From Syncephalis fuscata S228 (lineage: Eukaryota > Fungi > Zoopagomycota): a stretch of DNA of 64,000 bases. The stretch spans positions 620,001 through 684,000 of the forward strand of contig JAHLTZ010000012.1 in NCBI GenBank assembly GCA_025786725.1. Reading direction: 5' to 3'. The notes below the pieces were generated by a model, which searched no databases, had not been told where the DNA came from, and was given only the letters and a program-made list of their open reading frames with translations. A program made the position numbers and the translations under genes. Below are positions 4,542 to 42,872 of this stretch, in pieces; the first letter of the stretch is position 1; every line of letters begins with the position of its first letter.

Positions 4542-6095
<1,554 letters not shown>

Positions 6096-9700: not shown

Positions 9701-12665
9701 TCATCGTATTGGTAAGTAGTTAATTGAATGGTTAAACAACACTCGCTAATACTTATCTAGTTGTACTTAATGACGGTGAAATTATTGAATCAGGCACTCA
9801 TAATCAATTATTGGCCACTCGAGGTGCATATATGAAGTTACTAGTGGCCGAGAATGCTGAACGTGAAGCGGCCAAGAATGAAACACCAGATAATGACCAC
9901 TCTGATAATGAAGAGGATGAGGATAACAACAATGACGCCAATAATGAGGAAGAGGATGATTATGGTGGTGAATATATAGATCCATTTGCCGATAAACAGC
10001 CTAAACGGTCAACTAATCCTGAAACTAAAGTACCAGTCAAAGATTTAAAGAAGAAAAAGGACCCAAAGTCAAAAGATCAACCACCAGTACAAAGTATTCA
10101 AGATCCAGATCCACCCAAACATAAACTATTTATTATTCGTAATGGGGCTAAAGCAGGTCGTATTCAAAAAGATATCGATGGGGGAAAGTCACATGAATCT
10201 GATCATTTAGAGGAGACCGAGACTAAAGTGCCACTTATTCGACTATTGAAAGAAGCGGCACCTGAGAAATGGTTTGTACTGGGCGGCAGTCTAGCTTCTA
10301 TGATCAATGGATTGGTGTTACCATTCTTTGCCTGGATACTTGCCGAGTTACTAACGAGTCTAATGGGAGTTAAAAAGTAAGTTACCAAGTATACGCGATT
10401 TATATAGACTAATCGTTTTGTGTAGACCGGATACTTTGCGGCAACAATCTAACTTTTGGGCCTTAATGGTATTGACACTGGCCAATGTTTCATGTCTATG
10501 TCGATATGCTCAAGGTGCACTATTTGGACGGGCGGGTGAACGATTGGTGGGACGGTTACGCGTTAAAGCACTGCACAATATACTTCATCAAAGAATGGCC
10601 TTTTTCGATAAGCCTGAAAATAGTACCAGTAAGTCTATATTTATACGTATTATTATTATTATTATTGTACATAGTGTCGATTCATAGCTAATATGTTGAT
10701 GTAGCGGCACTTACTCAAACATTGGCGCTTGATCCAGTTAAAGTACCGCCCATTATTACAGAATTATGGGGAGAAGCATTACTTCATTTGGTGACTGTAG
10801 TAACTGGTGTATCAATTGCCTTTGCCAAAGGGTAAGCTGATAGATTATTGTGTCGATCTATATTTATACATAATATTGTGATTATTAATATATATGTCTA
10901 TATATATAGATGGAATTTTGCATTTTTAATTATTGCTTGTTTTCCGGCTGTATCAGGGGCCAGTGATTTACATGTTAATGCTATTCTAAGGTAATAAGCA
11001 TAACATTATAGTGTGTATTGACATTAATACTAATACTATTTATTTATTTATTAGACTTGGTAAACGATCGGCCAAAGCATTTGAACGAGCAGTCCGTATT
11101 GTTAAGCAAAGTGTACCGAATTTCCGTATGGTGATTGCCTTGGGTCGTGATCAAACATTTGAGGCTTACTTTGAAGGTGCATCTGTAGTTTATTGTGAAC
11201 ATGAATATGAATATTAACTTGTTTTGTATATTATAGCGGCCAGTATTGCTCCATATAAAGTGGCCATCCATGCTGCTCTTATTTCATCGGGTGGCTATGG
11301 ACTTTCACAAGGTAAATGGTTTAATCTATTATGGTTGGCCATGAATAGAATATACTAATGTTTATATAATAGGATTGCTTATTATGATCTATGCTGTCTC
11401 ATTTGGTTATGGCATGTCGGTGGTGGCCAGTGATGGTTATGCTCTACGCAACATGCTTATTATACTGTTTACCATTATGTTCACTATTACTAGTGGTAGT
11501 ACATTAATGAAGCTATGGGGTCAGTATGATGAGGCAACAACGGCAGCATTAAGGTAATTGTATAATAATCATATATATATTAGTACTAAACTAGTATTTA
11601 ATATAGCGTATTCCGTGTTATGGATGCACCAACACCGGATTCACGAGACTTACCAGATTCACCGGATAAAGCGACTCCATCACCGCCATCAGAAGATAAT
11701 AAGCCAAAATACGATAAAGGACAGATTACCTTCCGTAATGTGCAGTTTGCCTTTCCTATTCAGCCAAAAACCCAGGTATTTCGTCGATTGAATCTTCGTA
11801 TTCAACCAGGAAGATTAGTGGCCATTGTGGGTGCTACGCAAGCGGGTAAAAGTGCCCTAATTGGCATGATTCCTCGTTTCTACGATGCTAACAAAGGCCG
11901 AGTCGAAATTGATGGACAAGATGTGGGTGCATGGTCTATCGATACATTACGAGCGGGTATGTCGCTCGTTGAATGGGATGCGGCACTATTTGGCACAACC
12001 ATCAGTGAATGTCTCGAGTATGGAGCGGTGAAGGCAACAAGAAATGATGCTATTACCGCAGCACGTGTGGTAGGCTTGATAGTTGGTGTAGTAGCTTGCC
12101 CCAAGGCTACGATACACCCATTAAAGATATAAGTAGTGGGGAACTGAATGCCCAACGACGTCAATTAATTGCGCTTGGTCGAGCACTAATACGTCGTCCT
12201 AAAGTGCTACTACTTGATGATCCAACCGTCATCTTGACCCAGAAAGTGAGATTAAATTCCTAGAAGCATTAAAGAAATCAACTCGAGGTAAGGATATCAT
12301 TATATATATATAGTAATAGTACTCTTATTATTACTATTATTATTAGTTAAAGGATTTGAAAAGCGTACTTCACTTATTGCATCAAGTCGTATCTCTGTAG
12401 CCCAACATGCATCCACCATTGGTAAGTAGAAATGATATCCATTTATTATTATAACATTAATATTGATATATATATATATGTGAATGAACTTATAGTGGTA
12501 CTTCATCATGGACGAGTAGTGGAACGAGGATCACATTTTGATTTATTAGCCCGACGTGGTTACTATTACGCACTTGCTTGTAAACAAAGTGTACAACGCC
12601 GTGTAGAACCATGGGATTATATGTGGTCTATTGGCAAGAAATACGTACAGACACGTAGTATGTAA
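6748..12665 (+). CDS. Full-length ABCB (MDR/P-glycoprotein-like) transporter, more than 20 introns, degenerate NBD motifs
   Basis: TMD1 (LFRYA, VAERQAK..RVQYY), NBD1 ([17 protein letters not shown]), acidic linker, TMD2 ([22 protein letters not shown]), NBD2 ([30 protein letters not shown]). Confidence 0.92.
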
Positions 12666-12897
12666 TCATTTACACTACTTTTTACTATTTATACATTAAT
12701 CTATTTGATCATTTAATCATTCGTTGATCTATTATTTTATGGCATCATGTATCACATTGATTTCTTATTAACTACACCTGACCATTCTATACTATTCAAA
12801 TAAATACATACTATTTCATGCTATTATGATTGCTATAGTTATATATGATTATGATTATGATTATGATTAAAGCGTTTATTAGATGGTATCAACATCA

Positions 12898-13416
12898 TTA
12901 ATGCGATAGATATTTACGGCCTTTTAATCGACGACGAGCAAGGATTTTACGTCCATTTTTCGTTCGAAGGCGTGCTAGAAATCCATGACGGCGTTTACGC
13001 TTTATATTCGATGGTTGGTACTCGTTACCGTAAGTGACCCAACGAACTGATTGTAATTGCTGGAATATACTAGACGCGACGGCAGGTCCACCGGTAAGTC
13101 CGAATGGACGTGGCATTATTGGTCTACCGTTATTATTATACAAATAGTGTTAACATCAATACTGACACATTGTTAATAGCTATACTTACAGTGTGCTGCA
13201 TAGCAATGGAGTTGGACGGGTTATGGATGCGGTGAACGGAAGTAGCGAGGGACGTAGTCTAAAAAGTAATCTATATTAGAGATGACTTGTCTGCCGTATT
13301 CACCGGTATTCTCCTTACCCGGACGAGAAAGAACGGACTGGCGTGGACGCTAGCGTGAAAGGCGTCGTTCTTGTTGATACGGCACGCTGTATCGCAACAG
13401 CCCTATGAAATAACAT
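12898..13416 (-). CDS. MRPL34: Mitochondrial ribosomal protein bL34m
   Basis: C-terminus [45 protein letters not shown]. Upstream exons (donors near 13318 and 13189) give a basic presequence starting [12 protein letters not shown] at 13416. Confidence 0.93.
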
Positions 13417-13519
13417 GTTGTAGAATCTTTACGATTGAACAAATAAAATAGAAAAGAGATTCGTTATTTTTTCTTTTTATTCTATCTCGATTCCATTTCA
13501 ACTTTTACCAATACAATCA

Positions 13520-14033
13520 ATGGACATTAGCGAGTTAGTTGACAAAAAGACCGCTTCTAGTGTTCGTGATGTTAATGCACCAGACGACGCGGCGTTTGGT
13601 GGTCGTTTATTAACGGATGAAGAACGAGTATTTGAATTCAATGCTTGGTAAGCTATTTAGTGTAGCGTTGTTAATGGTTGGCTAGTATGTATTAAACGGT
13701 CTTCTTGACACTATTAGGGACCATGTCGAGTGGACCGAGGAGCATAAACAGCATGCTGATATGGTTATTGAGAAGCAGTCGGCTATAGTTATGTCAAATG
13801 AAGAGAAGGGTAAGTATTTTGGTTAGGTTATTTATATTGATTATTTAATCTATTGATTATGGATCAATAATTAGAGCGTCTTGAGCATGAAGCGCCTCAA
13901 CAATGGGATGCGTTTTATAGAGTCAATCAGAATCGGTTTTTTAAAGATCGACGATGGTTACGCATTGAATTTCCTGAACTATTTGAAGTTACGGTTAGTA
14001 ATATAGCATATGCATAAATAAATATTATATCTT

Positions 14034-14081
<48 letters not shown>

Positions 14082-14916
14082 TAGAATGAGCCACGCACGG
14101 TGCTTGAGATTGGCTGTGGTGCAGGTAATACACTTTTTCCATTACTGGCCGCCAATCCCGATCCAAATCTACGTGTGCTAGGCTGTGACTTTTCGGCCGA
14201 AGCAGTCCGTGTTGTAAAGGTAATTAGCACTCTACAAATCATTTATAATAGCTAATAGAGTATAATATTAATAAATACAAAATTGACTAGGCAAATCCAT
14301 TACTGGATCCTCAACGCTCAGATGCTTTTGTATGGGATCTATCATCGGATACATTGCCGGAAAGCGTGTCAAAGGAGTCGATTGATGTTATTGTATTGAT
14401 ATTTGTACTTTCTGCTCTTTCACCACAACAATGGCCACAAGCTATCCAAAACCTAGTATCTGTAAGTAGCATTGTATTTGTGAGCTACGAGGTATTAATA
14501 GTTATTAATTAGATGCTTAAACCGGGTGGGGTTATTCTATTTCGAGGTAAGATGATAAGCCGGTTACTAGAGTGATCATTTATTAAGGCATATTTAGATT
14601 ATGGACGACATGATATGGCCCAGTTACGCTTTAAACCAGGTCGTAAAATCGACAATAACTTTTACGTTCGTGGTGATGGTACTCGTGTTTATTTCTTTAC
14701 ACCGGGTAAGTAATTTGAAATGCATTGCACTTTTCTAATCACTATGCTTTATTATAATTATTAGAGGAAATAGATGAAATGTTTGGCACAGTATTTGCCA
14801 TTGAACAAAATGCCGTTGACCGTCGTCTTATTGTTAATCGTGTACGTAAACTGAAGATGTATCGCTGCTGGCTACAGGGCAAATTCCGTAAATCTTTATC
14901 ATCTGCAGAAACATAA
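13520..14916 (+). CDS. TRM140: tRNA m3C methyltransferase, Trm140/METTL2 family (spliced)
   Basis: [89 protein letters not shown]. Confidence 0.9.
14035..14082. repeat. Intronic (AT)n/(ATGT)n microsatellite
   Basis: atatatat..atgtatgtatgtatgt directly visible. Confidence 0.8.
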
Positions 14917-15848
14917 ACGCCAGCGACATTATAAATAAACAATTATAGTAGTTATATATATATATATATATTATTGGCATATTACAATTAAGTGCATTGG
15001 ATATAGCTATGCTTAACTATTTATTTTAACAATAATGTCACTGGCTTATTTAGTTAATGAATCATCTTATTCTATGTTAATTTTATTAAAAGTATAATAT
15101 GGTTTTGGTGATTAAATGACTAGTATTTAATAACATCCAATTTATTAAACATAATAATGGGCAGTGAATAACATCAACCATTAAATACTCATCATTGTAG
15201 ATTCATTATCCATTGCGCATATATCCGCCATTTATTTACATTATTCCCATTCTGTTCCACATTAATATATATCATTCTATGCCATATTAGACAGTTTTAT
15301 TGTTTATATGTTCCAATACACGCACCTCATTCTTTTTATTGCGTTATATGCACTATAACGTCAATACCGTTATTCTTACCTTTCATTATTTATATTCATC
15401 CTATTATATTATATTTATACTTATTTGAAATTGCTTTATTTAAAACATTGTCCATTATTCTAACTCTATTTGTTCAGTATTTGTGTAATAATAATAATAG
15501 TGTAAAAATGTTACGTCTACAGCTATGACAGACACATTAATGTTTACGAATGAGAGAATTTGAGTTTGAATTTGTAAAACTATCAAATAAAATACGACTA
15601 TGTTTTGCTATCAACTGTGAACCAGTCACAATCTCTATTAGCCTTGTCTTTCTCTTTGACTCATCTTTACTAATAGCGACCTTTGTCTTTGTTCTAACCA
15701 ACCAACCATCTTTATTTCTACCATAATTCTCGTATATTTCAGTTATTTTGCATAAGCATTCGAATAAGCGTTAAACAACATTAACCGAATGATTTGTACG
15801 GTCATTTAACCTGATTGAACCTACATTGTAGCGAATACAATAAACAAC

Positions 15849-18060
15849 ATGTCAAGGCCTGCTAGTACTCTAAACCCGCCGACCTCACGATCAAGTGCTG
15901 GACGCGAGACAGCACCGCTACTTCATTCGTCGTTGCCAAGACGGACGTCGTTTGCATCTGTTCGTCGGCGGTCTATTGCAACAACTGACGGTCATAGCAA
16001 TAATAGTCATGACGATGATCGTGATATGGCACAAGTTGTTTGTGGCAGTTTCTTTAACTTGACCGTTGGGTTGGCTGGCATGCAGTTTATCTGTAAGTAT
16101 GCCAAGTAGATAGTTGCATTAATTCCAACATTCTCCTGACAATAACATTTACATTAATACTTTCAGGGACGGTTGAATTGGGCTATGGCACACCGTATCT
16201 ACTTGCATTAGGTATGCCGCAGAATCTATTGCCGCTTGTATGGTCAGCTGGTCCATTATCGGGTAAGTGACATGAATACGTATCTATTTAACTATTTATA
16301 CTAATTAGCAATTATACCATTTAAACGGCAGGTCTATTGATCCAGCCAGCGGTCGGTGCTTATAGCGACGTGAGTACAAATCGACTAGGCCGTCGACGTC
16401 CATATATTATTGTTGGGCTATTTTGGTGCTACTTTCTGTATTGATGGTCGCTCATGCTCGATGGATTGCCATGCAGCTACTTGACGTGTGGACTCAACAA
16501 AAGGGCCACTACTCAAATGATGATCCAGTAGTAAGTAGATAGCATATGGCCACGTGAACCATACATAATACTGACCGATATTTAGATAGGTCAGATGGCC
16601 ATTGGCATTGCGGTAGCCGGATTCTTTATACTTGATTTCAGTATTAATGCCGTTCAAGCTTGTTTACGAGCATTGGTCGTTGATGTTGCTTCACTTGATT
16701 CACAGTCACGAGCCAATGCATGGGCCAGTCGTATGTTGGGCATTGGCAGTGTAATTGGCTATTTCACTGGTTATCTTGATCTGGTATTTCTATTTCCTGA
16801 GTTGGGCACTACACAAATGGAGGTGCTATGCTCGATTGGATCGATTGTGTTTGCAGTTTGCATTGCCTGGACCTGTTTAATGGTTCGTGAAGAGCGCTAC
16901 GTGCGTGGTATGGATGCACAGCAACAGTAAGTAGATGTACACTGTCTATTAGTATATAGCTTATTTTATGTTATAGTGCTTGGTATAAGCCATTGCGAGA
17001 TGTATTTCATGTATTATGGCATTTACCTGATCCTATACAACGTTTATGTACAACGCAATTCTTTGCATGGATGGCCTGGTTTCCTTTTCTTTTCTACAGG
17101 TAAATATTGTCTATATTAATGCTCGATTACTATTTAATTGGTATTTAATTGATATTCAATGATATATATAGCACAACGTGGATTATTAATGTACTTATGC
17201 GTGATCATTCACCGACTGAACCGGGATTTCTTGATGCTGCCACGAGAGCAGGAAGTTTTGCTCTTCTTTTAAATGCATTGTTATCGCTTTCTTCATCCAT
17301 TATTCTACCTCTATTTACAGGCTGGCTCAAAGAATTGCCGCACGTCGACGTCTTTCTGCCTCACATCGACCATCATTTGGTGCATTCGACGGGCATGGGA
17401 AGCATTGGTGGATAGCATTGTTGCTTCCTGGCGCTTACGCGGCGTATGGATATTCTCCAATGTATTCTTTGGCATTGTTCTACTTAGTACCTGGTTTGCC
17501 CGTGATGTATATGATGCTACTATCATCGTTGCTTTATGTGGTCTACCATGGGCGGTTGTTCTATGGGTGCCATTTGCTATGATAGGTGAACTATTGAATG
17601 TTACCAATGAAGAGCAGCGTGTATTCAAGTATATACCCAATACAGCAACATCGCCCTCAGCATCTTCTACTTCATTAGGCATTGATTATCCCAATAGTCC
17701 TAATAGTATCTCTTCAAGCTCGCTATTCCGCGAAGGATCTGCTGCACTAGCTAGAAATAGCCAGCTTCGTGAATCCATCATTGAGGCCAATCATAATGAC
17801 GATATTAGTCTAGAATCTGGTGTGGCTCTGGTATTATTAATATTTACGTAGTATTGCCTCAATTTGTCAGTACCATAGTGGCTACTATTATATTTGCCAT
17901 GTTCAACGATCCCAATAGTGTTGGTCATCACGATGATGGTATAGGCACAGGTACGAGCAATGAAGCAGTAGGCTGGGTACTACGTTTTGGTGGTGTTTGC
18001 GCTTTAATAGCGGCTATTATGGCATCACGATGTATTCAAGTGGATACACATCGCCCATAA
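15849..18060 (+). CDS. SUT1/SLC45-like (GPH/MFS) disaccharide transporter, spliced, with apparent frameshifts
   Basis: GMQFIWTVELGYGTPYL, WSAGPLSGLLIQP, GRRRPY, LDFSINAVQACLRALVVD, QFFAWMAWFPFLFY, WVPFAMIG, PQF. Confidence 0.88.
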
Positions 18061-18197
18061 ACGATTAGTACACATAGTAGCGATATTTACATTTATATTA
18101 GTTTAATAACAATTTATTTCAACACAATCTACAAAAGAAATAAAGTATATGATTCTTTTGAACAGTCGGATCAAATGGACATACACAATAGTTTGCT

Positions 18198-20028
18198 TTA
18201 ACTGATGATGCAATCACTGCTATTTCTCTTGGATGCCCGACCACTTTTACGACGAGCTTCGTTGTCGCTATCTGATTCACAATCGGTACTTGAGTTGTGA
18301 TTTGGTCTATGGCTATTTGAGCATGATTAGTGGTTATATTCTCTATATTTGAGTTTGGAATAGCACGGGCCTCTTCTCGTTCCATCTCTTCCTCTTCTTG
18401 TTGTTGTAGACTTAGTGCAAATGCAAAACTAATCAATTATTGTATTAGTATAATTGCTTTTAACTATACAAGTTATAAATACTTACTCTGCATCCAAGCT
18501 ATGCACTACTATATCCGATCGATTGCTGACATAGTCATTGACAACACGTTGTGCTTGGAACTTTGAATCGACCAGTTCACTGGTTGCACCGTGCACATCC
18601 GATAACACTTCCCAGATGGCTGATGACTGTGTCGCTAGACCAGCGTCTGTTACAAGTAAATAAAGTGTTTGATTGGGATGTTTAAAAAGTGTGGCAAACT
18701 AAATAGCTTAAATTAGTAAATTTATAATAAATGATAAATTGACTTACATGATTGTTACGGAATAAAATGCAAAGATTACCCGCTGGAATGGATTCAGAAA
18801 GCATTTGAAGTCCATAGAATGTTAATTGAGTTGGGTTAGATTCCAAGAATTGTTGTGCAATAAGTGCTGTTGTTCTATTATTAACTAGCGATCTATTGAT
18901 AGACTATGTGCTGTTATTCACTTACCATGATGTACTAGATTCATTCGCTGTGCACCGTCCATTTCAATTATGTCATCATCACGCGAACTGTCTCTTTGGC
19001 CTACACCATCGACTACTAGACCTTTACCAGCATGGTCACCTTGTGCTATCAATTCAACGATAGCATTATAGCTTTCACATCGATGGCACATAACTTGCCA
19101 GGTCTCTTCTTCGGCCGGATCGACACACCAGCCGTGCACTAATTCAACACCAAATGTTTGAAATAGAAGCAGCTCGTTACTGTTAGCAAATCCACGAGGC
19201 GATGAAAATTTAACATCAACGTCAAGACCATATTGCAAGCTTGGCAATAATCCAAGAACAGTTTGCAGGATAACTTGATCATTTGTAGGATCAGTCATTT
19301 GATCATCGGACTAATTAGTTGTTTATTAGCATTCATAATATAAATAAGCAACACTAATTACTTACAGTGTTTGTAGGTAGTGTTTGTAGTAATCGATCAC
19401 CCAGTAGAGCGATAAGATAGGATGCGCTCACCGTTGGACGATCTGGTGATTGTATTTCGATTTCACCGCGAAGGATCAGAACATTGCAAATGGCCAACAA
19501 AGGACACGGTCCATTTTCTATTATTACAATAAATAAAAACGATTATTACTCCTCATACTGTACTATTATAAATAACTTACTATTCTGCGTAATAATGTGA
19601 ACAACGCGACTATATCCAGTAATTGGGTCTTGCCATTCTATTGGTTTCAGCTTGTATTCATCAGTGCTGTCTTCTTCGTTATCTCTGGCATTATCGTTTC
19701 TGATAGAAGAAGATACTGCCGGTGTTTCCGTTGACGTAACGAATGGCATATCTGACTGTGTTGATACGATTGGATTGGCTGGAACAAGGGGCGTGCCATC
19801 TTGGCTATTTTCACTGTCCTGGCTGTCTGGTTGCGTTACTAGTTGTTCTTTAAGTGCTGTAGTAGGCAACTCTACGAGTACAGAATCCGCTATCTCGTCT
19901 TCGGGTGCTGTAACAACGATAGCGTCTGTGCTTAGATCGGTAGCAGCAGCAGTGGGCTCAAAAGGTGCTGTTGCTAAAACTGGCCCGTCAAGCTCCGGCT
20001 CACTTACTTCAGCATAAACCAATTGCAT
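18198..20028 (-). CDS. MINDY-1/2 family deubiquitinase (spliced)
   Basis: IITQNENGPCPLLAICNVLILRG, GLDVDVKF, ELVHGWCVDP, QLTFYGL, LFRNNHFATLFKH, LLVTDAG, AFALSLQQQE (MIU-like). The likely C-terminus KRNSSDCIIS-TAA (18198) requires a frame change in the last exon. Confidence 0.9.
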
Positions 20029-20279: not shown

Positions 20280-21878
20280 TTATTGCACTCTTTGTTGTCT
20301 GTGCTGCCATTGCATGACAATAAGATGAATTAGCAAGGGTGCAATTATCCAGACTAATAACACTGTACAATTGATCCACATTAATTGCTGCAGTGAACCA
20401 AAGAGTATAAATCGTAGTCCACGTATTGCATAGAAAACTGGAAATCCTTGACCCAGCCGATAGAACGCAGGAGACAGTGCAGTGTCGACCAGAATGTTAC
20501 TGGTGGGTATTAATAATAACAGCAAGAGTGCGCTAGCAAGGGGCAGTAATTTAATGCCTACCAATAAGCATAGTAGACTTAGAAGGCCAATAAACGCTAG
20601 ACCCGAATAGATTAGCCAAAGCAATGAAAGACTGGTGTAGCCTCCGTCCAATTGAGATTCATAGAAACAAAGCGGAGCTGACCAGATAAGCAAACAGAAA
20701 ATGGCTAGTCCAGTAATACCTTTTAAATAACGATATAAATTGGAGCGAGAAAACCATGGTCCCTGACAGTCAATACCTCTTGCGGTATCGCTTATAAAGT
20801 CGCATAGTATTATGGGACAATTTAGATTGTCGGCTTGCTCATCCAATTTGGGTGATGCATGATAAAGAGTAAGAACAATAATGGTGCAAGCAACATAAGT
20901 TAGCAATACTTGTAGATGAATAGAAAAACCTTGTCCAAACTGTTCCTCAATGTACATTGGCTTATTTTTGAGTTCTATAGGCTGTGACCATATTACTGTA
21001 CTTGCATTTTTAATGATCTCTACCGTGTCGTCATTTGCGTAAAAGTCCTGCCTTATTTGCGCATTAAGTTGATGTATTATCTGTTGCATAGACTGCATTA
21101 ACAACGTGTTTAAAGTGTGGTCACGGCTATGATCATAAAAATACTCCAAAGTAGGCGTCGGTCCTATAGTTGGCTCATCCTTCAGACCATATTGAATATA
21201 ATGAATAAATTGCTCCGTAAAATCATAGGGAATATTTACAATAGCCGCATACTCATTTTGTTGTAGCTTTCTTATAGCATCATTCAATGAATGGTTATCT
21301 GGATCGGATACCGCCTTCCAATTGATACGCCTTATAGGATTATTGATCATTTGCTTAGCGACAAATAATCCAAGTAAATTATTATCAGTAACTTTTGAGA
21401 TTGCCATACGAATTTTCGCTGCTAATGGTGTAGTGCTAATAAAGCCTTTATCGCTATTGATTAAACCAACGGGCAGCTGGTTAACACGAGCCGCTGGATT
21501 CCATAGAGCTCCTATGTACAGCCAACTATAGACGTATAGAGTAAGAGCCGAGATAGTAAATACGATCAATACTTTGTGCTGGGCTATCTGAGCCATAATA
21601 GATTTATAAATAGGATCATCGATTGATTTTTGATCGCTCTGCTGCTCCCGCTCTTCCATACCAATTATAATACTAGCTGGAATGGCATAGGATAGGTCAA
21701 ATGACTCAGAAAACTCATTTTTGATAATCTCCAAATGGGTTTCAATATCTTTGCTATATAAGTCATCTTCATGTTCATCGTCACTTAGTGCTATACTACT
21801 GGCATAGGTACTGCCCCGAAGCAGTTCCGAAGGTAGGCTAGCGATAGAATGCCCATAATCAGTGTTTTGGCTGGCCAT
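20280..21878 (-). CDS. SNG1/YhgE-Pip-like (DUF3533) membrane protein, single exon
   Basis: 532-aa ORF: one TM, LYIGALWNP..LPVGLINSDKG, a large extracellular loop (YAAIVNIPYDFT), then a C-terminal TM cluster with PAFYRLGQGFPVFYAIRGLRFILFG. Confidence 0.75.
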   Translation of the reverse strand: MASQNTDYGHSIASLPSELLRGSTYASSIALSDDEHEDDLYSKDIETHLEIIKNEFSESFDLSYAIPASIIIGMEEREQQSDQKSIDDPIYKSIMAQIAQHKVLIVFTISALTLYVYSWLYIGALWNPAARVNQLPVGLINSDKGFISTTPLAAKIRMAISKVTDNNLLGLFVAKQMINNPIRRINWKAVSDPDNHSLNDAIRKLQQNEYAAIVNIPYDFTEQFIHYIQYGLKDEPTIGPTPTLEYFYDHSRDHTLNTLLMQSMQQIIHQLNAQIRQDFYANDDTVEIIKNASTVIWSQPIELKNKPMYIEEQFGQGFSIHLQVLLTYVACTIIVLTLYHASPKLDEQADNLNCPIILCDFISDTARGIDCQGPWFSRSNLYRYLKGITGLAIFCLLIWSAPLCFYESQLDGGYTSLSLLWLIYSGLAFIGLLSLLCLLVGIKLLPLASALLLLLLIPTSNILVDTALSPAFYRLGQGFPVFYAIRGLRFILFGSLQQLMWINCTVLLVWIIAPLLIHLIVMQWQHRQQRVQ

Positions 21879-31596: not shown

Positions 31597-32337
31597 ATGC
31601 TACAAATCTAATCTATAATATTTTTATGGAAGATTTGTAAAAATACGTCGTTTATTTTATAATAGTATCATATTCGTGTTATACTAGGATAAGCGACTAA
31701 TTAGTAGCCATTAATGCTTAGGTGATAGAAGTAAATGTAAACAAGACAGCAGCCATTAAGTTGCTAGTCGTCACAATATAGTGCTAAGTTATTAAAAGTC
31801 AACAGTTATTTTTATATCAATATCAGTACAATATCATTTCATTATATAATAGTGATAGATTTGTTACTACCCATGGTATATCTACAAATAAGCGCGGTCA
31901 ACTTTATTGCCAATACACATCACTAAAATATTCACATTTAACATTGATATATCCATACCAATTTATGCTTATAGCTTACACAGTATAATCATACACATTT
32001 GTAAATTTAGCTATTTAATTAATAATTGTTATTATTGAATTTAAATAGAACATGGTTGTAGATGTATCGATTTGATTGTATATAGTTAAGATGAAACCAT
32101 AAGTTTATTACTATAAGCTTGCACAGTTGAATAGGGACAACTAGATGCAAAGTTGTTGGCAAAATAATGATTTCATTGATTAGAGACTGGATAAACCGGA
32201 GCATTGGCCAAAACTTGATATATAAATAAACTGGACGGCGTAGTTGTCAAATGGTCTTGCTTTTCACCGAATATATACCTAAAGTGTATTGGAATAGTGG
32301 TTTGACTGCACTACCAATGCTGACGTCTTGAAAGTAA

Positions 32338-35246
32338 TTATGGAGCTGTGTTTGTAAATAAAGATATTATATGTTGTATAATTAATGTATAAGCTATCAA
32401 TATAAAATGTTACTTACCGCCTATTATTATTAAGTTTTTAATACACATGGTGCATAATATGTGATTAATAAGCAATCAATTATATACAATCTGACTTACA
32501 ATACTCTAATGTTGATTTGTTGATGGATACAGTGCATGGTATATAATTAGTACATATTCAGTTAATATACAATACAAATGGGGACGTTGCTAGCCAGTAG
32601 GTAAGGCAGCGTTTCCCGAGCTGAAGGTTCCGGATTTAAACTGAGGTTTAAATCAGTTCTTAAGTGGAAAATCCCCTCCCAGCTTTCACTAGTTAACAAA
32701 TTGCAAACCAGAACCCAATAAGTAGGTCCGGAAACAAGACCTTGGCCAGAATAGCCGAGGAAAAGTCAATTGACACCAACTTCAAGAGAATAGTGCTGTG
32801 TAGCGCCATTTAAAAGAAGATGGTCCGCGTGGAATCTACATGGACCAGATTTGCGCAAAAACGTGGCAGTCCACCCGTTAAAAGTTTGGAAAAGTCCAAA
32901 TATAGTGGGAAGCAGCGCAAATTCTTTAATTATGTGCAGCAGGGGTTCACAAGCTCTTCAAAATAAAAAATAAAATACAATATCACTTACTGCCTATTAA
33001 TATTAAGTTATTGGTACACAATACATGATATGTAGTCAGTGTATATTCAGTTAATACATAATGCTACTTACTGCCTATTAATATTGAGTAATCAGTACAG
33101 TCGGTAAATAATATAAATAATATATAATCAGCTAATATACAATAAAACTTACAAACTATCAATATTAAACAATTGGTACAATTAGTAAATAGCATAGTTA
33201 ATATATAGTCAATTAATATACAATACAACTTACGGCCTATCAATATTAAACAATTAGTACAATAGTAAATAGTATAGTTAATGTATAGTTAATAATATAC
33301 AATACCACTTACCGACTATTAATATTAAACAAGTGGTACAATTAGTAAATAATATAGTTAATATAATTAATCAATATACAATACAACTTACCGCCTATTA
33401 ATATTAAATAATTGGTACAATTAGTAAATAGCATAGTTAATATATAGTCAGTGATATACAATAATACTTACAGACTATCAATATCAAACAATTGGTACAA
33501 TTAGTAAATAGTATAATTATTATATAGTTAGTTAATATATAATAATACTTACATACTATTATATTAAATAATTGGTGCAATTAGTAAATAGTATAATTAA
33601 TGTATAATCAGCTGATGTACAATAATACTTACATGCTATTATATTAAATAATCAGTATAATTAGTAAATATCATGATTAATGTATAGCTAGTTAACATAA
33701 AATATCACTTACTTCCTATTGATATAAAATAATCGGTACCATCAGTAAATAACATAATTAATATATAGTAAGTTGGTATACAATACCACTTACCATCTAT
33801 TAATATTGAATAATCAATATAGTTAGTAAATATTATAGTTAATATATAGTCAATTAATATGCAATGCTACTTACAAACTATTAATATTAAACAATCAGTA
33901 CAATCAGTAAATAGCATAGTTAATATACGGTATCACTTACCTTCTATTAATATTAAATAATTGGTACAATCAGTAAATACCATGATTAATGTATAGTCAG
34001 TTCATATACAATATCACTTACTAGCTATTAATAGTAAATAATTGTTATAGTTAATAAATAGTATAGTTAATGTATAGTCAGCTAATATATACTACCACTT
34101 ACGACCTATTAATATTAAGTTATTGATACAATCAATAAATAGCATGTTAATGTATAGTCAGTTAATATACAATATTACTTACATCCTATTAATATTAAAT
34201 CATTAATGCACATAGTACATGAATATAATTAGTGAGTGATTAGTTTATATACAATACAACCTACTCTCTATTATATTAAGTTATTGACACACACAATATA
34301 TAATATATAATTAGTGCATAATCAAGTAATATACAATACTACTTACTTCCTATTATAGTGAATTTTGATACACACAGCGCATGACATATAATTAATGCAT
34401 AATTAGTCATATACAATGATACTTACTGCCTATTAATATTAAGTTATTCATACACATAGTGCATAATATATAATTAGCCAATGCTCACTTAATATGCAAC
34501 ATAACTTACATTCTATTAGTATTAAGTTATATACCAGTGCATAGTATGAAATTAGCACATAATTGGTTAATATATAATACAACTTACCCTCTATGTCATT
34601 AAGTTATTGATATACATAATACATGGTAGCTAGTTAATGTATAAATCATCAGTATACAACATCACTTACCGCCTATTATTATTAAGTTTTAATACACATA
34701 GTGCATAGCATGCAATTAGTAAGTAATCAGTTATATACAATTCAACTTACATTTAGCTAATATTAAGTTATTGATAAATACAGTATATGGTACATAATTA
34801 GTATATGTTCTATTAATATGTAATACGACCTACCAGCTATTCATATTAAGTTATTGATCAACACAGTACATAAAATTTAATTGGTGTATAGTCAATTAAT
34901 GCACAGTAAAACTTACGATCTATTATATTAAATAATCGGTGTCATCAGTAAACAGCATAGTTAATATATAGTCAGTTAATATACAATACCACTTACCCCC
35001 TATTAACATTAGATAATTGGTATAATTAATAAATGGCATGTGATTAGTGTAGTCAAGTAATACGCAACGCAACTTACTGGCTATTATAATTATTAGTTAA
35101 AAATAGGGTTAATAAACAAATGCATGGTATATTTATTAATATTACAACATACAACGACGAACTAAGACTGGTTTAGCATCCACCATGGCTGTACTGGCCA
35201 CAAGCGCAACGACAATGGTGCAAACGATGGCAATGGAAAACTTCAT
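32338..35246 (-). CDS. Microexon gene A: 31 exons, 64-aa secreted six-Cys peptide precursor MKFSIAIVCTIVVALVASTAMVDAKPVLVRR-SRDPAKCEECRKRCPKVYGTLFCVGLCSKYCAP
   Basis: Exon 1 is 35246-35153 (ends in phase 1, donor GTATGT). Microexons in order (lowest coordinate given): 35078 CCA, 34997 GGG, 34917 ATC, 34834 CTG, 34751 CTAAAT, 34670 GCG, 34588 AGG, 34510 AAT, 34427 GCA, 34347 GAA, 34265 AGA, 34183 GAT, 34103 GTC, 34022 CTA, 33941 AAG, 33875 TTT, 33794 ATG, 33713 GAA, 33633 CAT, 33553 TAT, 33472 TCT, 33392 GCG, 33313 TCG, 33234 GCC, 33153 TTT, 33072 GCA, 32991 GCA, 32500 AGTATT, 32418 GCG. Each is flanked by TAG and GTAAGT/GTAGGT. The terminal exon starts CTCCATAA (32345-32338). Confidence 0.9.
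32575..32974 (+). mobile_element. 400-bp structured insertion with A-rich 3' end (retroposed ncRNA / SINE-like) in an intron of gene A
   Basis: Abrupt rise in GC. Flanked by the direct repeat ATACAATA (32567-74 and 32975-82). Ends AAAATAAAAAATAAA. Absent from the equivalent intron of gene B (37889-37965). Contains several hairpins. Confidence 0.75.
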
Positions 35247-35385
35247 GGTGATATTGACTTGTTGAGACAAACAACTAAAAAGATAGTAGAGTGTGGTTGG
35301 TGTAGAGTGGAAAGTAGTGCGTGTTTAGCAGAAAATAGAGTGTGCTGGTGATATCGCAGTTGGTGGTTGTGTATATTTTGTAGGC

Positions 35386-35393
35386 TATTTATA
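35386..35393 (-). promoter_or_regulatory. Putative TATA box of gene A (TATAAATA)
   Basis: About 140 nt upstream of the ATG. Gene B has TTTAAATA at the equivalent position (40385-40392). Confidence 0.45.
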
Positions 35394-37728
35394 CTTACGG
35401 CTATGCTGCGATACTGGTATACTGTAGCATACAAGGCATATCATTGATGTGTAATATGAACCAATAAAGCAATCCAACTAATGGTTTAAGGTACGCATGT
35501 ACCAATATATTCATGGTGTAATAGAATATTCTTAGACTTGATTTCAACCTGCCTGGTCTTTACTTCAATCTGTCAGTCATTTACACGAATAACAGTAATC
35601 GTAATAATCCAGCACATATGCGATAAAAATAGACATATTCACCTGTATTTTTTGTTACACGGTCTAACTATTTGGTAAAAACAAGTATGTTGTTTGGCTT
35701 TGTGAAAACAATAATGATGTCTTTGCTGTCATTTCTACCGATTCAGTCCTTAATATCTGCATGCATACAGAATAGCACGCAACATTGATGCAAAAACAAG
35801 TTAATATGTCAAACTGGTATTTTATACAAGTTTTACTGCCATACATAGGCAGCCATAATTTTTTAAATTATAAAATGCGTTGATTGGTACATGTATGCAT
35901 TTCATTCGACACTATGCCGATTGTTATGGGGTAGTCATTGTTTCAAATTTACAAGTTCATTGCATTCAGGCATATCATGCTACATGTTGTGCGACCACCA
36001 TCATTCAAATGACGGCTAATCCAAATTACTTGGGTTTGACTATACAATAAATACTGTTTGTAGCATGATGCATACAGCATTTTGAGCAATGGAACATTCC
36101 AACAAGTCATTTTCATCATCAATTTCAGCTGTAAACTAGATTGCATTGGATAAATTACACACAATACAATATGCAGACACTAGATTAGACACAATAAAAG
36201 CTTTGGCCAATTACCAGCCATTTCGAGTGCATAGTGGCTGTGGATCGTATACTAACCGGTAACTATCCAAAGCCTAAGTGCTGCCCACATTTCTGAAACC
36301 ACTTCTAACAAGTTAAGCAAGAAGAACATAGAAAAACAATTGGCAGCTCAAAGGCCTACTGGTTTAGCTTATAGCAAGTCATTATCGCCATACCATGTTA
36401 GACTGAGTTTACCAACGACCCAACTATTGATGATGCAGCTAGAACGATAGCACTAAACGAAAGTAACGCATGAAAACAAAAAACATTATGCATAGCATTT
36501 AATAAAACTGCAAAATACACACATGCTGTTATGCTTTGGATTGTATAAGGGTAATTGAGGAAATGATGAACGAATGAGAAGAAATCAGACAATAGCGTAG
36601 ATATTGTCAGCAAGTGTTTAATGCACTCGACAATAAAAATGGTAAAATTTTGTTACGATGCCGAATTACAGTATTATGATTACGTAGTATCTATCATGCG
36701 ATTGATTCATAATGCCCACCATGTAATCGAACAGCTGCTAACGATAATATGTGAATATCCACAACAACAATATATTAAATACTAGTACTAACAATCATAA
36801 ACAAACAGCTATCCAAAAACATAGCTAGTAAATACTTGTTGTTTACTGACATATGATCAACCATATGAACAAGGCTCAAATTCCATTAACAATAGCATTT
36901 ACTATAAATTACTTGCTTTATTGGAATTATAATAAACATATCTACATCTTTGGTTATATATTATTTTCTCTGCTTTAGTTACAAATGATATTTAGCTGCT
37001 AAAGGCTTAACTCTGGTAATTGATAATTAAAAGGATAATTATTTATTGTTATTTTATAATAGTATCATATTCATGTTATACTAGGATAAGCGATTAATTA
37101 GTAGCCACTAATGCTTAGGTGATAGAAGTAAATGTAAACAAGACAGCAGCCATTAAGTTGCTAGTCGTCACAATATAGTGCTAAGTTATTAAAAGTCAAC
37201 ATTATTTTTATATCAATATAGTACAATATCATTTCATTATATAATAGTGATAGATTTGTTACTACCCATGGTATATCTACAAATAAGCACAGTCAACTTT
37301 ATTGCCAATACACATCACTAAAATATTCACATTTAACATTATATATCCATACCAATTTATGCTTATAGCTTACACAGTATAATCATACACATTTGTAAAT
37401 TTAGCTATTTAATTAATAATTGTCATTATTGAATTTAAATAGAACATGATTTAATATAGCAATTTGATTGTATATAGTTAAATGAAACCATAAGTTTATT
37501 ACTATAAGCTTGCACAGTTGAATAGAACAACTAATGCAAAGTTGTTGGAAAATAATGATTCCATTGATTAGAGACTGGATAAACCGGAGCATTGGCCAAA
37601 ACTTGATATATAAATAGACTGGACGGCGTAGTTGTCAAATGGTCTTGCCTTTTGCCGAATATATACCTAAAGTGTATTGGAATAGTGGTTTGACTGCACT
37701 ACTAATGCTGATGTCTTGAAGCCATTGA

Positions 37729-40249
37729 TTATTCTGTATTTACAAATAAAGATATTACACATGGTTAATGTATAAGTCATCAATACACAATTCAACTTAC
37801 GGCCTATTAATATCAAGTTGTTGATACACATGGTACATAGCATGTGATTAGTGAGTAACCAATTAATATACAATACAACTTACATCCTCTAATGTTGATT
37901 TGTTAATGGATACAGCACATGATATATCATTAGAGCATAGCCAATTAATATACAACATAACTTACTGCCTATTAATATTAAGTTGTTAGCATACACAGTA
38001 AATAGCATATGATTAGCGCATAATTAAGTAATATATAATATCACATACAATCTATTAATAAGGTTGTTGATGCATACAGTGCATAATATATAATTAGCGT
38101 ATAATCAATTAATACACGATATTACTTACGGGCTATTATATTAAATGGTTAATATAGCAGTAAATGGTATAGTTAATGTATAGTTAGTTAATATGCAATA
38201 GCACTTACTTGCTATTAATATTAAATAGTTGGTACAATCAGCAAATAGCATAATTAATGTATAGTCAATTAATATAATACCACTTACAGACTATTAATAT
38301 TAAATATTGGTACAATTAGTAAATATTATGTGATTAGCGCATGTCAGTTGACATATAATACAACTTACAGCCTGTTAATATTAGGTTGTCGATGTCACAG
38401 TAAATAGTATGTGATTAGCGTATAGTTAATAATATATATTATCACATACAACCTATCAATAGGGTTGTTGATGCATACAATGCATAATATATAATTAGCG
38501 TATAATCAATTAATACACAATACAACTTACTTGCTATTAAATATTAAATAATTGGTACAATCAGTAAATAACATAATTAATATATAGTCAATTAATATAC
38601 ACTACAACTTACACCCTATTGATATGAAATAATTGGTATAATTAAGTAAATATTATAGTTAATGCATAGTCAATCAATATACAATATCACTTACTATCTA
38701 TTGATATTAAACAATTGGTATAATTATTAAAAGCATAATTAATGCATATTCAATTAATATACACTAAAACTTACCAACTGTCGATATTAAATAATCGGTA
38801 CGATCAGTAAATAGCATAGTTAATATATAATCAGTTAATATACAATACAACTTACAGGCTATTAATATTAAATAGTTTTTACAATCAGCAAATATCAGTT
38901 AGCGTATAGTCAAGAAACATACAATATCACTTACGTTCTATTGATATTAAACAATTGTACAATCAGCAAATAGCATAGTTAAGGCATAGTTGATTAATAT
39001 ACAATACCACTTACTCCCTATTAGTATTAAATAATCAGTGCAATCAGTAAATGTCATGATTAATAGGTAGTTAATTAATATGCAATATCACTTACTATCT
39101 ATTAGTATTAAATAATTGGTACAATTAGTAAATAGCATAGTTAATGTATAGCCAGCTAATATAAAATATTACTCACACTCTATTAATATTAAATAATTAG
39201 TACAATTAGTAAATAGTATAGTTAATGTATATTCATTTAATATACAATATCACTTACCATCTATTGATATTTAACAATCAGTTCAATCAGTGCAATCAAT
39301 GCAATCAGTAAATAGCATAATGCATAGTCAATTAATACATAACATCACTTACCACCTATTGTAGTAAATTATTGATGCATACAATACACAACACGTAATT
39401 AGTATAGTCAGTTAATACACGATATAACTTACACACTAGTGAGTTGTTGATACAATACATGAATATAATTAGTGCATAGTCAGTTAATATACAACATAAC
39501 TTACTTCCTATGGCATTCAGTTATTAATAAACACAGTACGCGGCACATAATTAGTGCATAATCAAGTAATATACAATACTACTTACTTCCTATTATATTA
39601 AATTTTTAACGCACAGCGCATGACATATAATTAATGCATAATTAGTCAATATACAATGATACTTACTGCCTATTAATATTAAGTTATTCATACACATAGT
39701 GCATATATATAATTAGCCAATGCTCACTTAATATGCAACATAACTTACATGCTATTAATATTAAGTTGTTGATATACACGGTGCATGGTATATAATTAGC
39801 GCATAATCGGCTAATATACAATGTACTTACCCCCTATTATATTAAGTTATTGATATAAACAATACATGGTATAGAATTAATTTATAATTTATCAATATAC
39901 AAATCACTTACTGCCTATTAATATTAAGTTGTTGATACACATAGTGCATAGCATGCAATTAGTAATAATCAGTTATATACAATTCAACTTACATAGATCT
40001 AATATTAAGTTATTGATAAATACAGTATATGGTACATAATTAGTGAGTAGTTGGTTAATATGCAATACCACTTACCATCTATTATAATCATCATTTATAA
40101 ATACTGTTAGTAAGCATAATGCCATAATATATTTATTAATATTGCAACATACCACCACGGCGAACTAAGGCTGGATTAGCATCCACCATGGTTGTGACGG
40201 CCACAAGCGCAACGACAATGGTGCAAACGACGGCAATGGAAAGCTTCAT
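37729..40249 (-). CDS. Microexon gene B: 31 exons, 64-aa secreted six-Cys peptide precursor MKLSIAVVCTIVVALVAVTTMVDANPALVRR-GDDLCRACRRMCDEYRKPFDRSSCFSTHCKDCQ (last residues assume one missing base)
   Basis: Exon 1 is 40249-40153 (phase 1). Microexons: 40076 ATG, 39993 ATCTAT, 39912 GCA, 39831 GGG, 39749 CAT, 39667 GCA, 39587 GAA, 39505 GAA, 39433 TGT, 39353 GTG, 39258 ATG, 39177 AGT, 39096 ATA, 39015 GGA, 38935 AAC, 38856 CCT, 38775 TTG, 38695 ATA, 38613 GGT, 38531 CAA, 38450 GTT, 38369 GCT, 38288 TCT, 38209 CAA, 38130 CCC, 38049 ATT, 37966 GCA, 37884 AGGAT (5 nt as assembled), 37801 GCC. The terminal exon starts AATAA (37733-37729). Confidence 0.85.
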
Positions 40250-42872
40250 GGTAATATGATTGTTAGACAAACAAATAAAAAGATAGTAGAGTGTGGTTGG
40301 TATAGAATGAAGAATAGTGTGTGTTTAGAAAGAAGTAGAGTGTGATGATATATTGCAGTTGGTGGTTGTGTATATTTTGTAGGCTATTTAAATCTATGGT
40401 TATGCTGAGGTACTGGTATACTGTAGCATACGAGGCATATCATTGATGTGTAATATGAACCAATAAAACAATTAAATAATGATTGAAATACACATGTGCC
40501 AATAGATTTGTGGCATGATACCATGGTTTCAGTCTTGATTTCAACCTGCCGGTCTTTACTTCAATCTGCCATCATTTACACGAATAACAGTAATCGTAAT
40601 AATCCAGCACATATGCGATAAAAATAGACATATTCACCTGTATTTTTTGTTACACGGTCTAACTATTTGGTAAAAACAAGTATGTTGTTTGGCTTTGTGA
40701 AAACAATAATGATGTCTTTGCTGTCATTTCTACCGATTCAGTCCTCAATATCTGCATGCATACAGAATAGCACGCAACATTGATGCAAAAACAAGTTAAT
40801 ATGTCAAACTGGTATTTTATACAAGTTTTACTGCCATACATAGGTCAGCCATAATTTTTTAAATTATAAAATGCGTTGATTGGTACATGTATGCATTTCA
40901 TTCGACACTATGCCGATAGTTATGGGGTAGTCATTGTTTCAAATTTACAAGTTCATTGCATTCAGGCATATCATGCTACATTTTGTGCGACCACCATCAT
41001 TCAAATGGCGGCTAATCCAAATTACTTGGGTTTGACTATACAATAAGTACTGTTTGTAGCATGATGCATTACAGCATTTTGAGCAATGGAACATTCCAAC
41101 AAGTCATTTTCATCATCAATTTCAGCTGTAAACTAGATTGCATTGGATAAATTACACGCAATACAATATGCAGACACTAGATTAGACACAATAAAAGCTT
41201 TGGCCAATTACCAGCCATTTCGAGTGCATAGTGGCTGTGGATCGTATACTAACCGGTAACTATCCAAAGCCTAAGTGCTGCCCACATTTCTGAAACCACT
41301 TCTGACAAGTTAAGCAAGATAGAACATAGAAAAACAATTGGCAGCTCAAAGGCCTACTGGTTTAGCTTATAGCAAGTCATTATCGCCATACCATGTTAGA
41401 CTGAGTTTACCAACGACCCAACTATTGATGATGCAGCTAGAACGATAGCACTAAACGAAAGTAACGCATGAAAACAAAAAACATTATGCATAGCATTTAA
41501 TAAAACTGCAAAATACACACATGCTGTTATGTTTGGATTGTATAAGGGGTAATTGAGGAAATGATGAACGAATGAGAAGAAATCAGACAATAGCGTCAGA
41601 TATTGTCAGCAAGTGTTTAATGCACTCGACAATAAAAATGGTAAAATTTTGTTACGATGCCGAATTACAGTATTATGATTACGTAGCTATCTATCATGCG
41701 ATTGATTCATAATGCCCACCATGTAATCGAACAGCTGCTAACGATAATATGTGAATATCCACAACAACAATATATTAAATACTAGTACTAACAATCATAA
41801 ACAAACAGCTATCCAAAAACATAGCTAGTAAATACTTGTTGTTTACTGACATATGATCAACCATATGAACAAGGCTCAAATTCCATTAACAATAGCATTT
41901 ACTATAAATACTTGCTTTATTGGAATTATAATAAACATATCTACATCTTTGGTTATATATTATTTTCTCTGCTTTAGTTACAAATGATATTTAGCTGCTA
42001 AAGGCTTAACTCTGGTAATTGATAATTAAAAGGATAATTATTTATTGTTATTTTATAATAGTATCATATTCATGTTATACTAGATAAGCGATTAATTAGT
42101 AGCCACTAATGCTTAGGTGATAGAAGTAAATGTAAACAAGACAGCAGCCATTAAGTTGCTAGTTATCAGTGTGCCATAAGTAACTGCAATAGTTTAATTG
42201 CATTTTTTAATTACATGCAATGTCTAACAAACTATTTGAAAAAGCTATGTTTACCAGTATCGAAGAACTGAGGGTTGCCATTGATGAGTCTAGAATTTTT
42301 GGTAATTGTAAATGGTGTTGCTACATTCTTAAATATAAAACCAAAAGATGTACAATTAAAAGCATTAAGTACAGGTTTAATTATTCAATATGCACTAGCA
42401 ATTGTAATAGCTCAACAGATGTTATTATTTCTTATTGCAAAGCTTAGTTTGTTTTTGATTCAATAGAAAAAATGACATTGCCACAACAGCAGTGATAAAA
42501 TGATGTAACTTTAACCAAGTAACTAAAAAAGAAAAGAAAGAAGTAGTGGCTTATTCAGATGTTTTAATATCAACTTAATAAAATATTTTATCTTTATTAT
42601 CATTCACCACTCATCAGCATCGTGTTCAATAAATAATGCGTATTTTAATTGCGCAAAACATTATCAAATAAACTTAAGACCAAACACACTAAATTATTAA
42701 TAAATTATTTATAAAAACAAATTATACAATACTAGAATGTTCAGATAGTAGAATATATATGTTTATCATTGCTGATCATTGTATTCAATGGGCGTATCCG
42801 CGTGACCGTTTAAATGAGCACACGTCACCGCAACTGGCAATGCGTGCAACTTTCATTTCTCATCTCAACACT

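Follow-up and report, generated by a model that had tools for sequence, protein, structure and literature searches.

How can a stretch of DNA that Tandem Repeats Finder calls an 81-82-bp satellite encode a pair of secreted peptides? The question is raised by the minus strand of a 64,000-nt window (the whole stretch of contig JAHLTZ010000012.1 that was analysed, positions 620,001 to 684,000) from Syncephalis fuscata (Zoopagomycota), an obligate mycoparasite with fungal hosts. A preliminary description had read the repeat as two genes, A and B, cut into exons of 3 nt by a chain of short introns. A and B were compared with six further arrays, each headed by the same signal exon, on six other contigs, making eight loci; the curated set holds 178 microexons from six arrays, with L010 and L011 as two further arrays. 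We hold with high confidence that these arrays are fully spliced genes, now or recently. Gene A has the following parts.

35386-35393, minus strand: TATA-like box, 147 nt upstream of the ATG
35153-35246, minus strand: exon 1, 94 nt, with the ATG, a hydrophobic signal peptide and a short pro-region with a dibasic RR end; ends in phase 1
32418-35080, minus strand: microexon array, 29 exons, 27 of 3 nt and two of 6 nt
34756-34751 and 32505-32500, minus strand: the two 6-nt exons, within the microexon array
32338-32345, minus strand: terminal coding exon, 8 nt including the TAA, followed by a 3' UTR of about 250 nt
32104-32109, minus strand: AATAAA, about 20 nt before the A-run end point of the processed paralogs

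The introns of gene A are paralogous, in phase 1 and 63-80 nt long, except one (32990-32506) that reaches 485 nt because a retroelement-like insertion sits in it. The coding total is 195 nt, the length first given for both genes, and the count of 27 exons of 3 nt among 29 is found again in the model of gene B. Checked junction by junction, in residue classes only, the product of gene A is stop-free with cysteine gaps of 2, 3, 8, 3 and 3, as originally read. When the exon order of gene A is shuffled, 2.2% of the orders stay stop-free, and a fraction of 1.1e-4 is stop-free with six cysteines in a CxxCxxxC-containing pattern. We think it quite probable that gene A is currently expressed. Gene B has a similar anatomy.

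About 40392-40385, minus strand: variant of the TATA-like box
40153-40249, minus strand: exon 1, 97 nt, encoding the signal peptide and an RR-containing pro-region; shares 90% identity with gene A's exon 1; ends in phase 1
37801-40078, minus strand: microexon array, 29 exons, 27 of 3 nt, one of 6 nt (39998-39993) and one of 5 nt, with introns of 67-92 nt
37884-37888, minus strand: the 5-nt exon, where the reading frame breaks
37729-37733, minus strand: start of the terminal exon; its TAA is the homologue of the stop in the other arrays but is not in frame in the assembly
37495-37500, minus strand: AATAAA

The coding sum of gene B up to this TAA is 194 nt, one short of the proposed 195. Only five cysteines stand in frame (gaps 2, 3, 11 and 4) because the 5-nt exon at 37888-37884 breaks the frame; read literally, the frame continues for 32 codons in the terminal exon, as far as 37637. 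The C-terminus and sixth cysteine attributed to peptide B are thus not what the assembly encodes. The break may be a true frameshift or an assembly error. There are two frame breaks in 568 exon bases, a rate that matches the one predicted from the near-identical flanks (12 1-bp indels in 1645 columns), so the breaks may be assembly noise.

All 60 introns of A and B, 30 per gene, are of the GT..AG type and are copies of one unit of about 78 nt. The chain of introns was seen correctly, whereas the length range given for it (63-90 nt) has to be widened to 63-92 nt, and the 485-nt intron had been missed. Every intron is in phase 1, and each exon consists of two bases of one codon and one base of the next; the phrase "one codon per exon" has to be given up, every codon being split. 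The reading of triplets as whole codons (phase 0) is excluded, since exon 1 leaves the frame in phase 1 and a phase-0 reading loses the cysteines. Branch-like motifs are present, as had been reported, but at several offsets rather than at one fixed site. Among the 178 curated microexons, 168 are of 3 nt (94%), seven of 6 nt and one each of 15, 5 and 2 nt; 176 preserve the frame as multiples of 3, all acceptors are TAG or CAG, and all donors are GT or GC. The number of microexons per gene is 17-40. Four of the six curated arrays keep an open frame as far as their stop. L008 has a frame-breaking exon (L008:13806), reaches a stop one exon too soon and carries three insertions. The 3-nt spacing lies far above background: the arrays gave 205 matches over 26.7 kb, and 220 kb of other sequence gave 22, with a flat length distribution. 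Short fungal introns are usually intron-defined. The array introns would be recognised in this way and removed one after another, each removal joining one triplet to the growing upstream exon.

Variation is confined to the exons, in agreement with the first reading: entropy is 1.8-2.0 bits at exon positions and 0-0.4 at the flanking splice sites, and units with flanks 87-94% identical have an exon identity of only about 28%. Compared with one another the exons are close to random, and the array products are non-repetitive; the array introns are all paralogous, with a mean identity of about 70%.

A and B belong to a family that in S. fuscata comprises 16 deposited models besides these two unannotated genes. 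Its members have a signal peptide, a short pro-piece, an RR cleavage site and a hypervariable mature peptide; the conserved hydrophobic N-terminus, AxA-type site and RR of all members were judged from sequence. At eight loci or more, the coding sequence of the mature part is an array whose unit is a spliceosomal intron of about 78 nt plus a 3-nt exon. The scaffold C-x2-C-x3-C-xn-C-x3-C-x3-C, with n = 8 in A, 7 in L006, 13 in L009 and 13 in the intronless copy L003:8752-8961, bears out the six-cysteine pattern first proposed for gene A, but the family is wider than this and some members encode cysteine-free peptides. All relatives of exon 1 found are from the S. fuscata assembly; none was found outside it, and a metagenome scan with the exon-1 alignment gave no relative. 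Pfam and PDB sequence searches gave no match, and no Rfam family matched.

None of the eight array loci is annotated correctly. Their deposited models are truncated or garbled and retain introns after the second or third microexon; those of P0007 and P0008 cannot be rebuilt from canonical splice sites, and the best fit for P0007 consists of 3-nt pieces with one displaced by 2 nt, which supports the layout weakly. The model of P0013, on the other hand, has a unique canonical structure of 94+3+3+83 nt that joins two consecutive 3-nt exons. Together with the paralogous arrays and the exon-by-exon matches given below, it upholds the original claim of spliced micro-exon genes missed by gene finders.

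Further evidence comes from intronless paralogs, with which the microexons of A and B were compared exon by exon in scripts (as counts and residue classes only). Microexons 1-10 of gene A match successive stretches of the intronless gene P0002 at 28 of 33 nt (p about 2e-5); seven of the first nine exons are perfect, and 50,000 shuffles of the order never reached this score. L009 also scores 28/33, and gene B 20/33 (p 4e-4). In four intronless copies the similarity to array genes is limited to the stretch between the 5' UTR and about +250 past the stop, where a 5-6-nt A-run follows at the poly(A) site; the array genes lack this run. Such processed copies keep full six- or eight-cysteine scaffolds, and P0002 retains its promoter and 1.1 kb of 3' flank. 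In a 3' UTR tree, which has few well-supported branches and no outgroup root, array and intronless loci lie on both sides of a 99/98 branch. Intronless copies may arise now and then by reverse transcription of spliced mRNAs, and the retroelement found inserted in array units is a plausible agent.

Three further features are found in the window.

31652-37048: tandem-duplication unit with gene A, 5.4 kb including the insertion
37049-42098: tandem-duplication unit with gene B, 5.0 kb
32575-32974, plus strand: 400-bp retroelement-like insertion with an A-rich tail, lying in antisense orientation within intron 28 of gene A

Identity between the two units is 99-100% in the distal upstream DNA and 85% in the promoter-proximal 300 bp, with far greater divergence in the arrays. 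Duplication inside arrays is seen in L006, where introns 7, 8 and 10 match 11, 12 and 14 at 94-100%, and in gene B, where B21 matches B26; across the two genes, A6, 9 and 10 match B3, 6 and 7 at 94-99%. The insertion in gene A is flanked by an 8-bp target-site duplication (32982-32975 and 32574-32567), and related copies occupy the same unit position in other arrays. Seven retroelement-like insertions were counted across arrays, all inside introns, with only short ORFs. As the units are all phase 1-1 and the introns near-identical, single residues or short blocks can be added, deleted or swapped in frame. Unequal crossing-over and gene conversion would edit residues within and between genes in this way. 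Germline shuffling of units is probably the main diversifier, and it may be the main purpose of the layout or a consequence of it. We regard it as highly probable that A and B are hypervariable secreted-peptide genes diversified residue by residue through unit duplication and conversion.

A different use of real genes would be alternative splicing in the style of the micro-exon genes (MEGs) of schistosomes, for which this role has been described (PMC4350168), stochastic skipping of triplets yielding a cloud of peptide variants. The exons are all symmetric, and 26 of the 29 single skips simulated in gene A avoid a stop; the other three create one, and 10 of the 29 lose a cysteine. Intron definition of short introns disfavours skipping, the processed copies retain complete scaffolds, and germline unit duplication is directly visible. 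We find it unlikely that skipping is the main role, and the two ideas are not exclusive.

Less probable still is that the arrays are decaying relics, once spliced, whose transcripts now mostly stall partly spliced while the intronless copies do the work. The frame breaks in B and L008, the seven insertions and the introns kept in the deposited models past the second or third microexon all suggest decay. Splice dinucleotides are, however, intact at 178 of 178 curated microexons, with four of six arrays open to their stop; the insertions are confined to introns, and the two frame breaks fit the indel rate of the flanks.

It appears very improbable that an introner-like element inserted introns singly into intronless ancestors such as P0002, the layout being a by-product. 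The paralogy of all array introns would follow the same way, and intronless paralogs do exist, with P0002 keeping its promoter and 3' flank. But some 30 insertions per gene would be needed, at exact 3-nt spacing and all in phase 1, in eight genes. Introner-type introns occur as similar copies scattered through many unrelated genes, and within the roughly 250 kb examined the unit is found only in this peptide family. Several intronless copies bear marks of processing, and the duplication of whole blocks of units shows that the arrays have grown in tandem.

That the locus is a non-coding AT-rich satellite with splice-like motifs and a cysteine pattern by chance, as the satellite call and the lack of an ORF or a deposited full-length model might suggest, has practically no likelihood left, the exon-by-exon match to an intronless coding gene effectively refuting chance, with further arguments from variability confined to triplets, the shared signal exon and UTRs, the shuffle tests and the lack of an Rfam family.

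The hypervariable secreted-peptide reading can be carried one step further, to a diversity-generating gene in which recombination of a satellite-like array edits a folded secreted peptide per residue and in frame, about 30 consecutive 3-nt exons are joined accurately, the repeat unit is the target of a retroelement, and versions that succeed are fixed as intronless genes by reverse transcription; as a whole we lean only slightly towards it. The product of gene A would be a 33-residue, three-disulfide helical hairpin secreted at the interface with a host or competitor, and the odds of an effector or antimicrobial role seem a little better than even. The fold was predicted for a natural intronless paralog as a stand-in for the A and B peptides, giving a helix-loop-helix with a pLDDT of 89.5. 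Its best Foldseek matches are VBP-8 (TM 0.79) and the Jug r 2 peptide (TM 0.75), at E values of 6-8 that are not significant; P0002 gave nothing useful in Foldseek. On this model, the likeness to alpha-hairpinin-type proteins is at most a shared fold.

If true, about 2.5-2.9 kb of gene is spent on fewer than 200 coding bases. With one intron per residue, we know of no coding sequence that is more fragmented. The arrays offer a natural test of the lower exon-size limit, of intron definition and of splicing order. They let a non-repetitive protein arise from a tandem repeat, and in a single genome introns are seen both to multiply by tandem duplication and to be lost wholesale by way of cDNA. 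An entire effector-like family can disappear from an annotation through repeat masking and gene finders; its peptides are candidates for mycoparasite attack on fungal hosts and possible antifungal leads.

Literature searches on fungi and on Syncephalis found no described arrays of this layout, and we could not find a description of a gene built of consecutive 3-nt exons. Fungal spliceosomes are known to handle exons of 1-3 nt in Coprinopsis cinerea (PMC12230235) and in Trichoderma Xlr2 (PMC11121469); in C. cinerea there are 27 3-nt exons in 26 genes genome-wide (PMC12230235), while gene A has 27 in one run. The predicted product resembles plant alpha-hairpinins, vicilin-buried peptides and kappa-hefutoxin-type hairpins, which are short disulfide-stapled helix-loop-helix peptides with a CxxxC per helix (PMC7191063), and CX3C-Xn-CX3C is a sub-pattern of the scaffold in A, L006, L009 and L003:8752. 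Alpha-hairpinins are of plant origin, pair their cysteines as C1-C4 and C2-C3, and act as antimicrobials or inhibitors. Unlike them, the fungal peptides have six rather than four cysteines and come one per precursor.

The preliminary description likened the genes to Schistosoma MEGs, and they do work like them: both form a multigene secreted family in a parasite, with a conserved signal peptide and a hypervariable remainder, both split the greater part of the mature coding sequence into tiny symmetrical exons that automatic annotation misses, and both are associated with transposable elements. MEGs, reported as flatworm-restricted (PMC4350168, PMC10526429), have 10-20 exons, mostly of 15 bp, and introns of 0.1-5 kb (PMC10526429). 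The S. fuscata arrays, by contrast, have 17-40 exons, 94% of them of 3 nt with all codons split, and their introns are tandem copies of one unit of about 78 nt in a fungal genome; no sequence homology was found, and they are not members of the MEGs. Another parallel is with SmPoMuc of S. mansoni and SOWgp of Coccidioides, where a tandem genomic repeat of exon plus intron varies in copy number, the intron part evolves in concert while the exons stay distinct, and exons are exchanged between copies (PMC2576457). In SmPoMuc a unit of about 1 kb, of which 27 bp are exon, makes a repetitive protein, whereas in S. fuscata a unit of 81 bp with a 3-nt exon makes a non-repetitive peptide.

The two genes on the minus strand of the window are laid out as follows.

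Gene A, minus strand: first exon of 94 nt; 29 microexons, 27 with 3 nt and two with 6 nt; terminal exon of 8 nt; 195 nt in total
Gene B, minus strand: first exon of 97 nt; 29 microexons, 27 with 3 nt, one with 6 nt and one with 5 nt

GT..AG borders were found in 60/60 introns of A and B, which are copies of one unit with an average pairwise identity of 71%; one A intron is extended to 485 nt by an insertion of 400 bp. Both first exons close in phase 1, and introns therefore divide each mature-region codon into 1+2 bases. The spliced models were compared exon by exon and the junctions of A were read as residue classes. Junction by junction, A keeps an open frame with cysteine gaps of 2,3,8,3,3, which bears out the six-cysteine peptide of the preliminary description. 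Shuffling the exon order of A left the frame stop-free in 2.2% of cases and gave six cysteines with a CxxCxxxC start in 1.1e-4. The B peptide proposed there differs at its C-terminal end from the assembly-encoded one: the frame is broken at the 5-nt exon 37888-37884 (minus strand), five cysteines lie upstream of the break and the literal frame continues for 32 codons. In 1645 columns of flanking sequence, nearly identical between the two duplicated units, there are 12 single-base indels, and from this rate about 2 indels are predicted in 568 microexon bases; 2 were seen. The break in B may be assembly noise or genuine. The duplicate flanks 35550-37050 and 40550-42100 are 99-100% identical except that single-base indels are common, a pattern that hints at consensus errors of this assembly.

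S. fuscata is a zoopagomycete of a genus of obligate mycoparasites (PMC13188720; PMC6784888). A and B are surrounded by ordinary fungal genes, namely an ARG5,6-like gene, DUF3533, GNAT and a BEACH protein; the DUF3533 ORF (20280-21878) spans 532 aa in the window against 375 aa in the deposited model. Numerous short exons of mixed lengths with canonical splice sites occupy positions 1-19500; intron density is generally high in this genome, though with no 3-nt bias.

The exon-1 profile search returned sixteen proteins, all from S. fuscata. All ten exon-1 matches among 1.84 billion representatives also belong to this species, with no relative outside it, and no match was found in metagenomes. Six of the ten family loci examined (L006-L011) are further microexon arrays, on other contigs, lying between the common signal exon and the common 3′ UTR; those named here for their peculiarities are given in local coordinates.

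L007, 10001-11890: array for a cysteine-free peptide, in which one exon, of 15 nt, carries an additional dibasic site
L008, 10001-15020: longest array, 40 microexons, strongly homogenised introns
L010, 10001-13100: array for a predicted cysteine-free peptide
L011, 6001-8500: array with ordinary 9-nt and 33-nt exons upstream

The six curated arrays (A, B, L006-L009) contain 178 microexons: 168 measure 3 nt, seven 6 nt, and one each 15, 5 and 2 nt. Every acceptor is TAG or CAG and every donor GT or GC; the three exon positions are near maximal variability while the splice sites are invariant. The six-cysteine scaffold of A recurs in L006 (loop 7) and L009 (loop 13) but the predicted peptides of L007 and L010 are cysteine-free, so the layout is a property of the family and is not tied to one peptide type. 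L008 has a 2-nt exon within a run of G, a stop that falls one exon short of the terminal exon, and three insertions; this array may be decaying.

Evidence for joining of the microexons comes from the paralogs with an uninterrupted mature region, present at 4/10 loci. One of them, the gene of the deposited model P0002, matches the first ten A microexons in successive stretches at 28/33 bases; among exons one to nine of this series seven match perfectly, the 6-nt exon included, and none of 50,000 shuffles equalled this match. The intronless gene at L003:8752 has a cysteine spacing identical to that of the L009 array. Processed copies have the established anatomy of reverse-transcribed spliced mRNA. 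Four intronless copies, whose similarity to array genes is confined to a stretch from within the 5′ UTR to ~250 nt past the stop, and which have a short A-run right after the AATAAA common to array genes, appear to bear this signature. The P0002 gene has a different anatomy.

P0002 gene, L002 157-366: all introns absent, including the non-repeat first intron; promoter and >1 kb of 3′ flank kept

Since promoter and 3′ flank are kept, it is better read as in-place intron loss or the ancestral state than as a processed copy; whole-gene intron loss through cDNA conversion is possible. In the unrooted 3′ UTR tree, array and intronless loci fall on either side of the sole well-supported deep branch, and it is simpler to assume that the array arose once and was lost several times. 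At L003 8690-10880, two intronless family genes lie in a 1.25-kb tandem repeat with near-identical 3′ UTRs and flanks; their mature peptides diverge strongly, with six cysteines in one and eight in the other, and each gene is followed by a degenerate family fragment. Another deposited model, P0013, has a single canonical solution of 94+3+3+83 nt, that is, two successive 3-nt exons and then a retained intron. Ab initio predictors seldom call consecutive 3-nt exons, and we therefore infer transcript support behind P0013 for at least the first splicing steps.

The precursor consists of a signal peptide, a short pro-piece, RR and the mature peptide, the RR being presumably cleaved by a Kex2-type protease. 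Pfam and PDB sequence searches gave no match. For an intronless paralog that shares the scaffold, a helix-loop-helix is predicted (pLDDT 89.5), with alpha-hairpinin-type peptides as closest structural neighbours (TM <=0.79, E ~7). By analogy, the likeliest function, at slightly better than even odds, would be that of an effector or antimicrobial peptide acting on fungal hosts or on competitors.

A and B lie within a 5-kb tandem duplication, the distal upstream DNA of which is 99-100% identical; the identity is 85% in the proximal promoter and 90% in exon 1, and the peptides are very different. Their introns align in shifted register (A6, A9 and A10 with B3, B6 and B7 at 94-99%), B contains an internal duplication, and in L006 a four-unit block is duplicated at 94-100%. 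Between units with 87-94% identical intron flanks, exon likeness is at chance level; the 5′-end exons at equivalent positions are conserved between genes. The pattern is as would be expected if conversion homogenised the array introns and selection acted on the exons, as described for SmPoMuc repeats (PMC2576457). MEG-style exon skipping is a possible source of peptide variants, but it would be costly: single-exon skips in A introduce a stop in 3/29 cases and lose a cysteine in 10/29. With units that add 3 nt in phase 1-1, the frame is kept whenever units are gained, lost or exchanged, and for this reason germline shuffling of units, residue by residue, is favoured as the diversifier of the mature peptide.

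Seven related insertions of ~340-820 bp interrupt the arrays, all antisense and in the same orientation.

Window 32575-32974, antisense: insertion in gene A
L006 10737-11315, antisense: insertion
L007 11233-11648, antisense: insertion
L008 10175-11075, 11495-11944 and 13080-13562, antisense: three insertions
L010 10730-11165, antisense: insertion

The L006 and the first L008 insertions have only the tail-proximal 70-80 bp in common with other copies; no copy outside the arrays was found in the DNA examined for them. The fixed site in the 81-bp unit (~15 nt after the donor), the shared orientation, the A-rich tail, the far ends varying by truncation and the target-site duplications (8-16 bp where checked) are marks of a candidate target-specific non-LTR retroelement.

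The 3-nt exons known from fungi occur singly and scattered; Coprinopsis has 27 of them, spread over 26 genes. The literature searched, which covered few subscription journals, contained no account of arrays like these. On the basis of one assembly, with full-length splicing predicted from the gene sequences, we rate the arrays as a real, extreme variant of the micro-exon gene idea, and possibly as a new class of diversity generator. They share a secreted product and symmetric microexons with schistosome MEGs, and with SmPoMuc the construction as exon-intron repeats; they belong to neither group, since their exons are of another size and their introns of another type, and both product and lineage differ.
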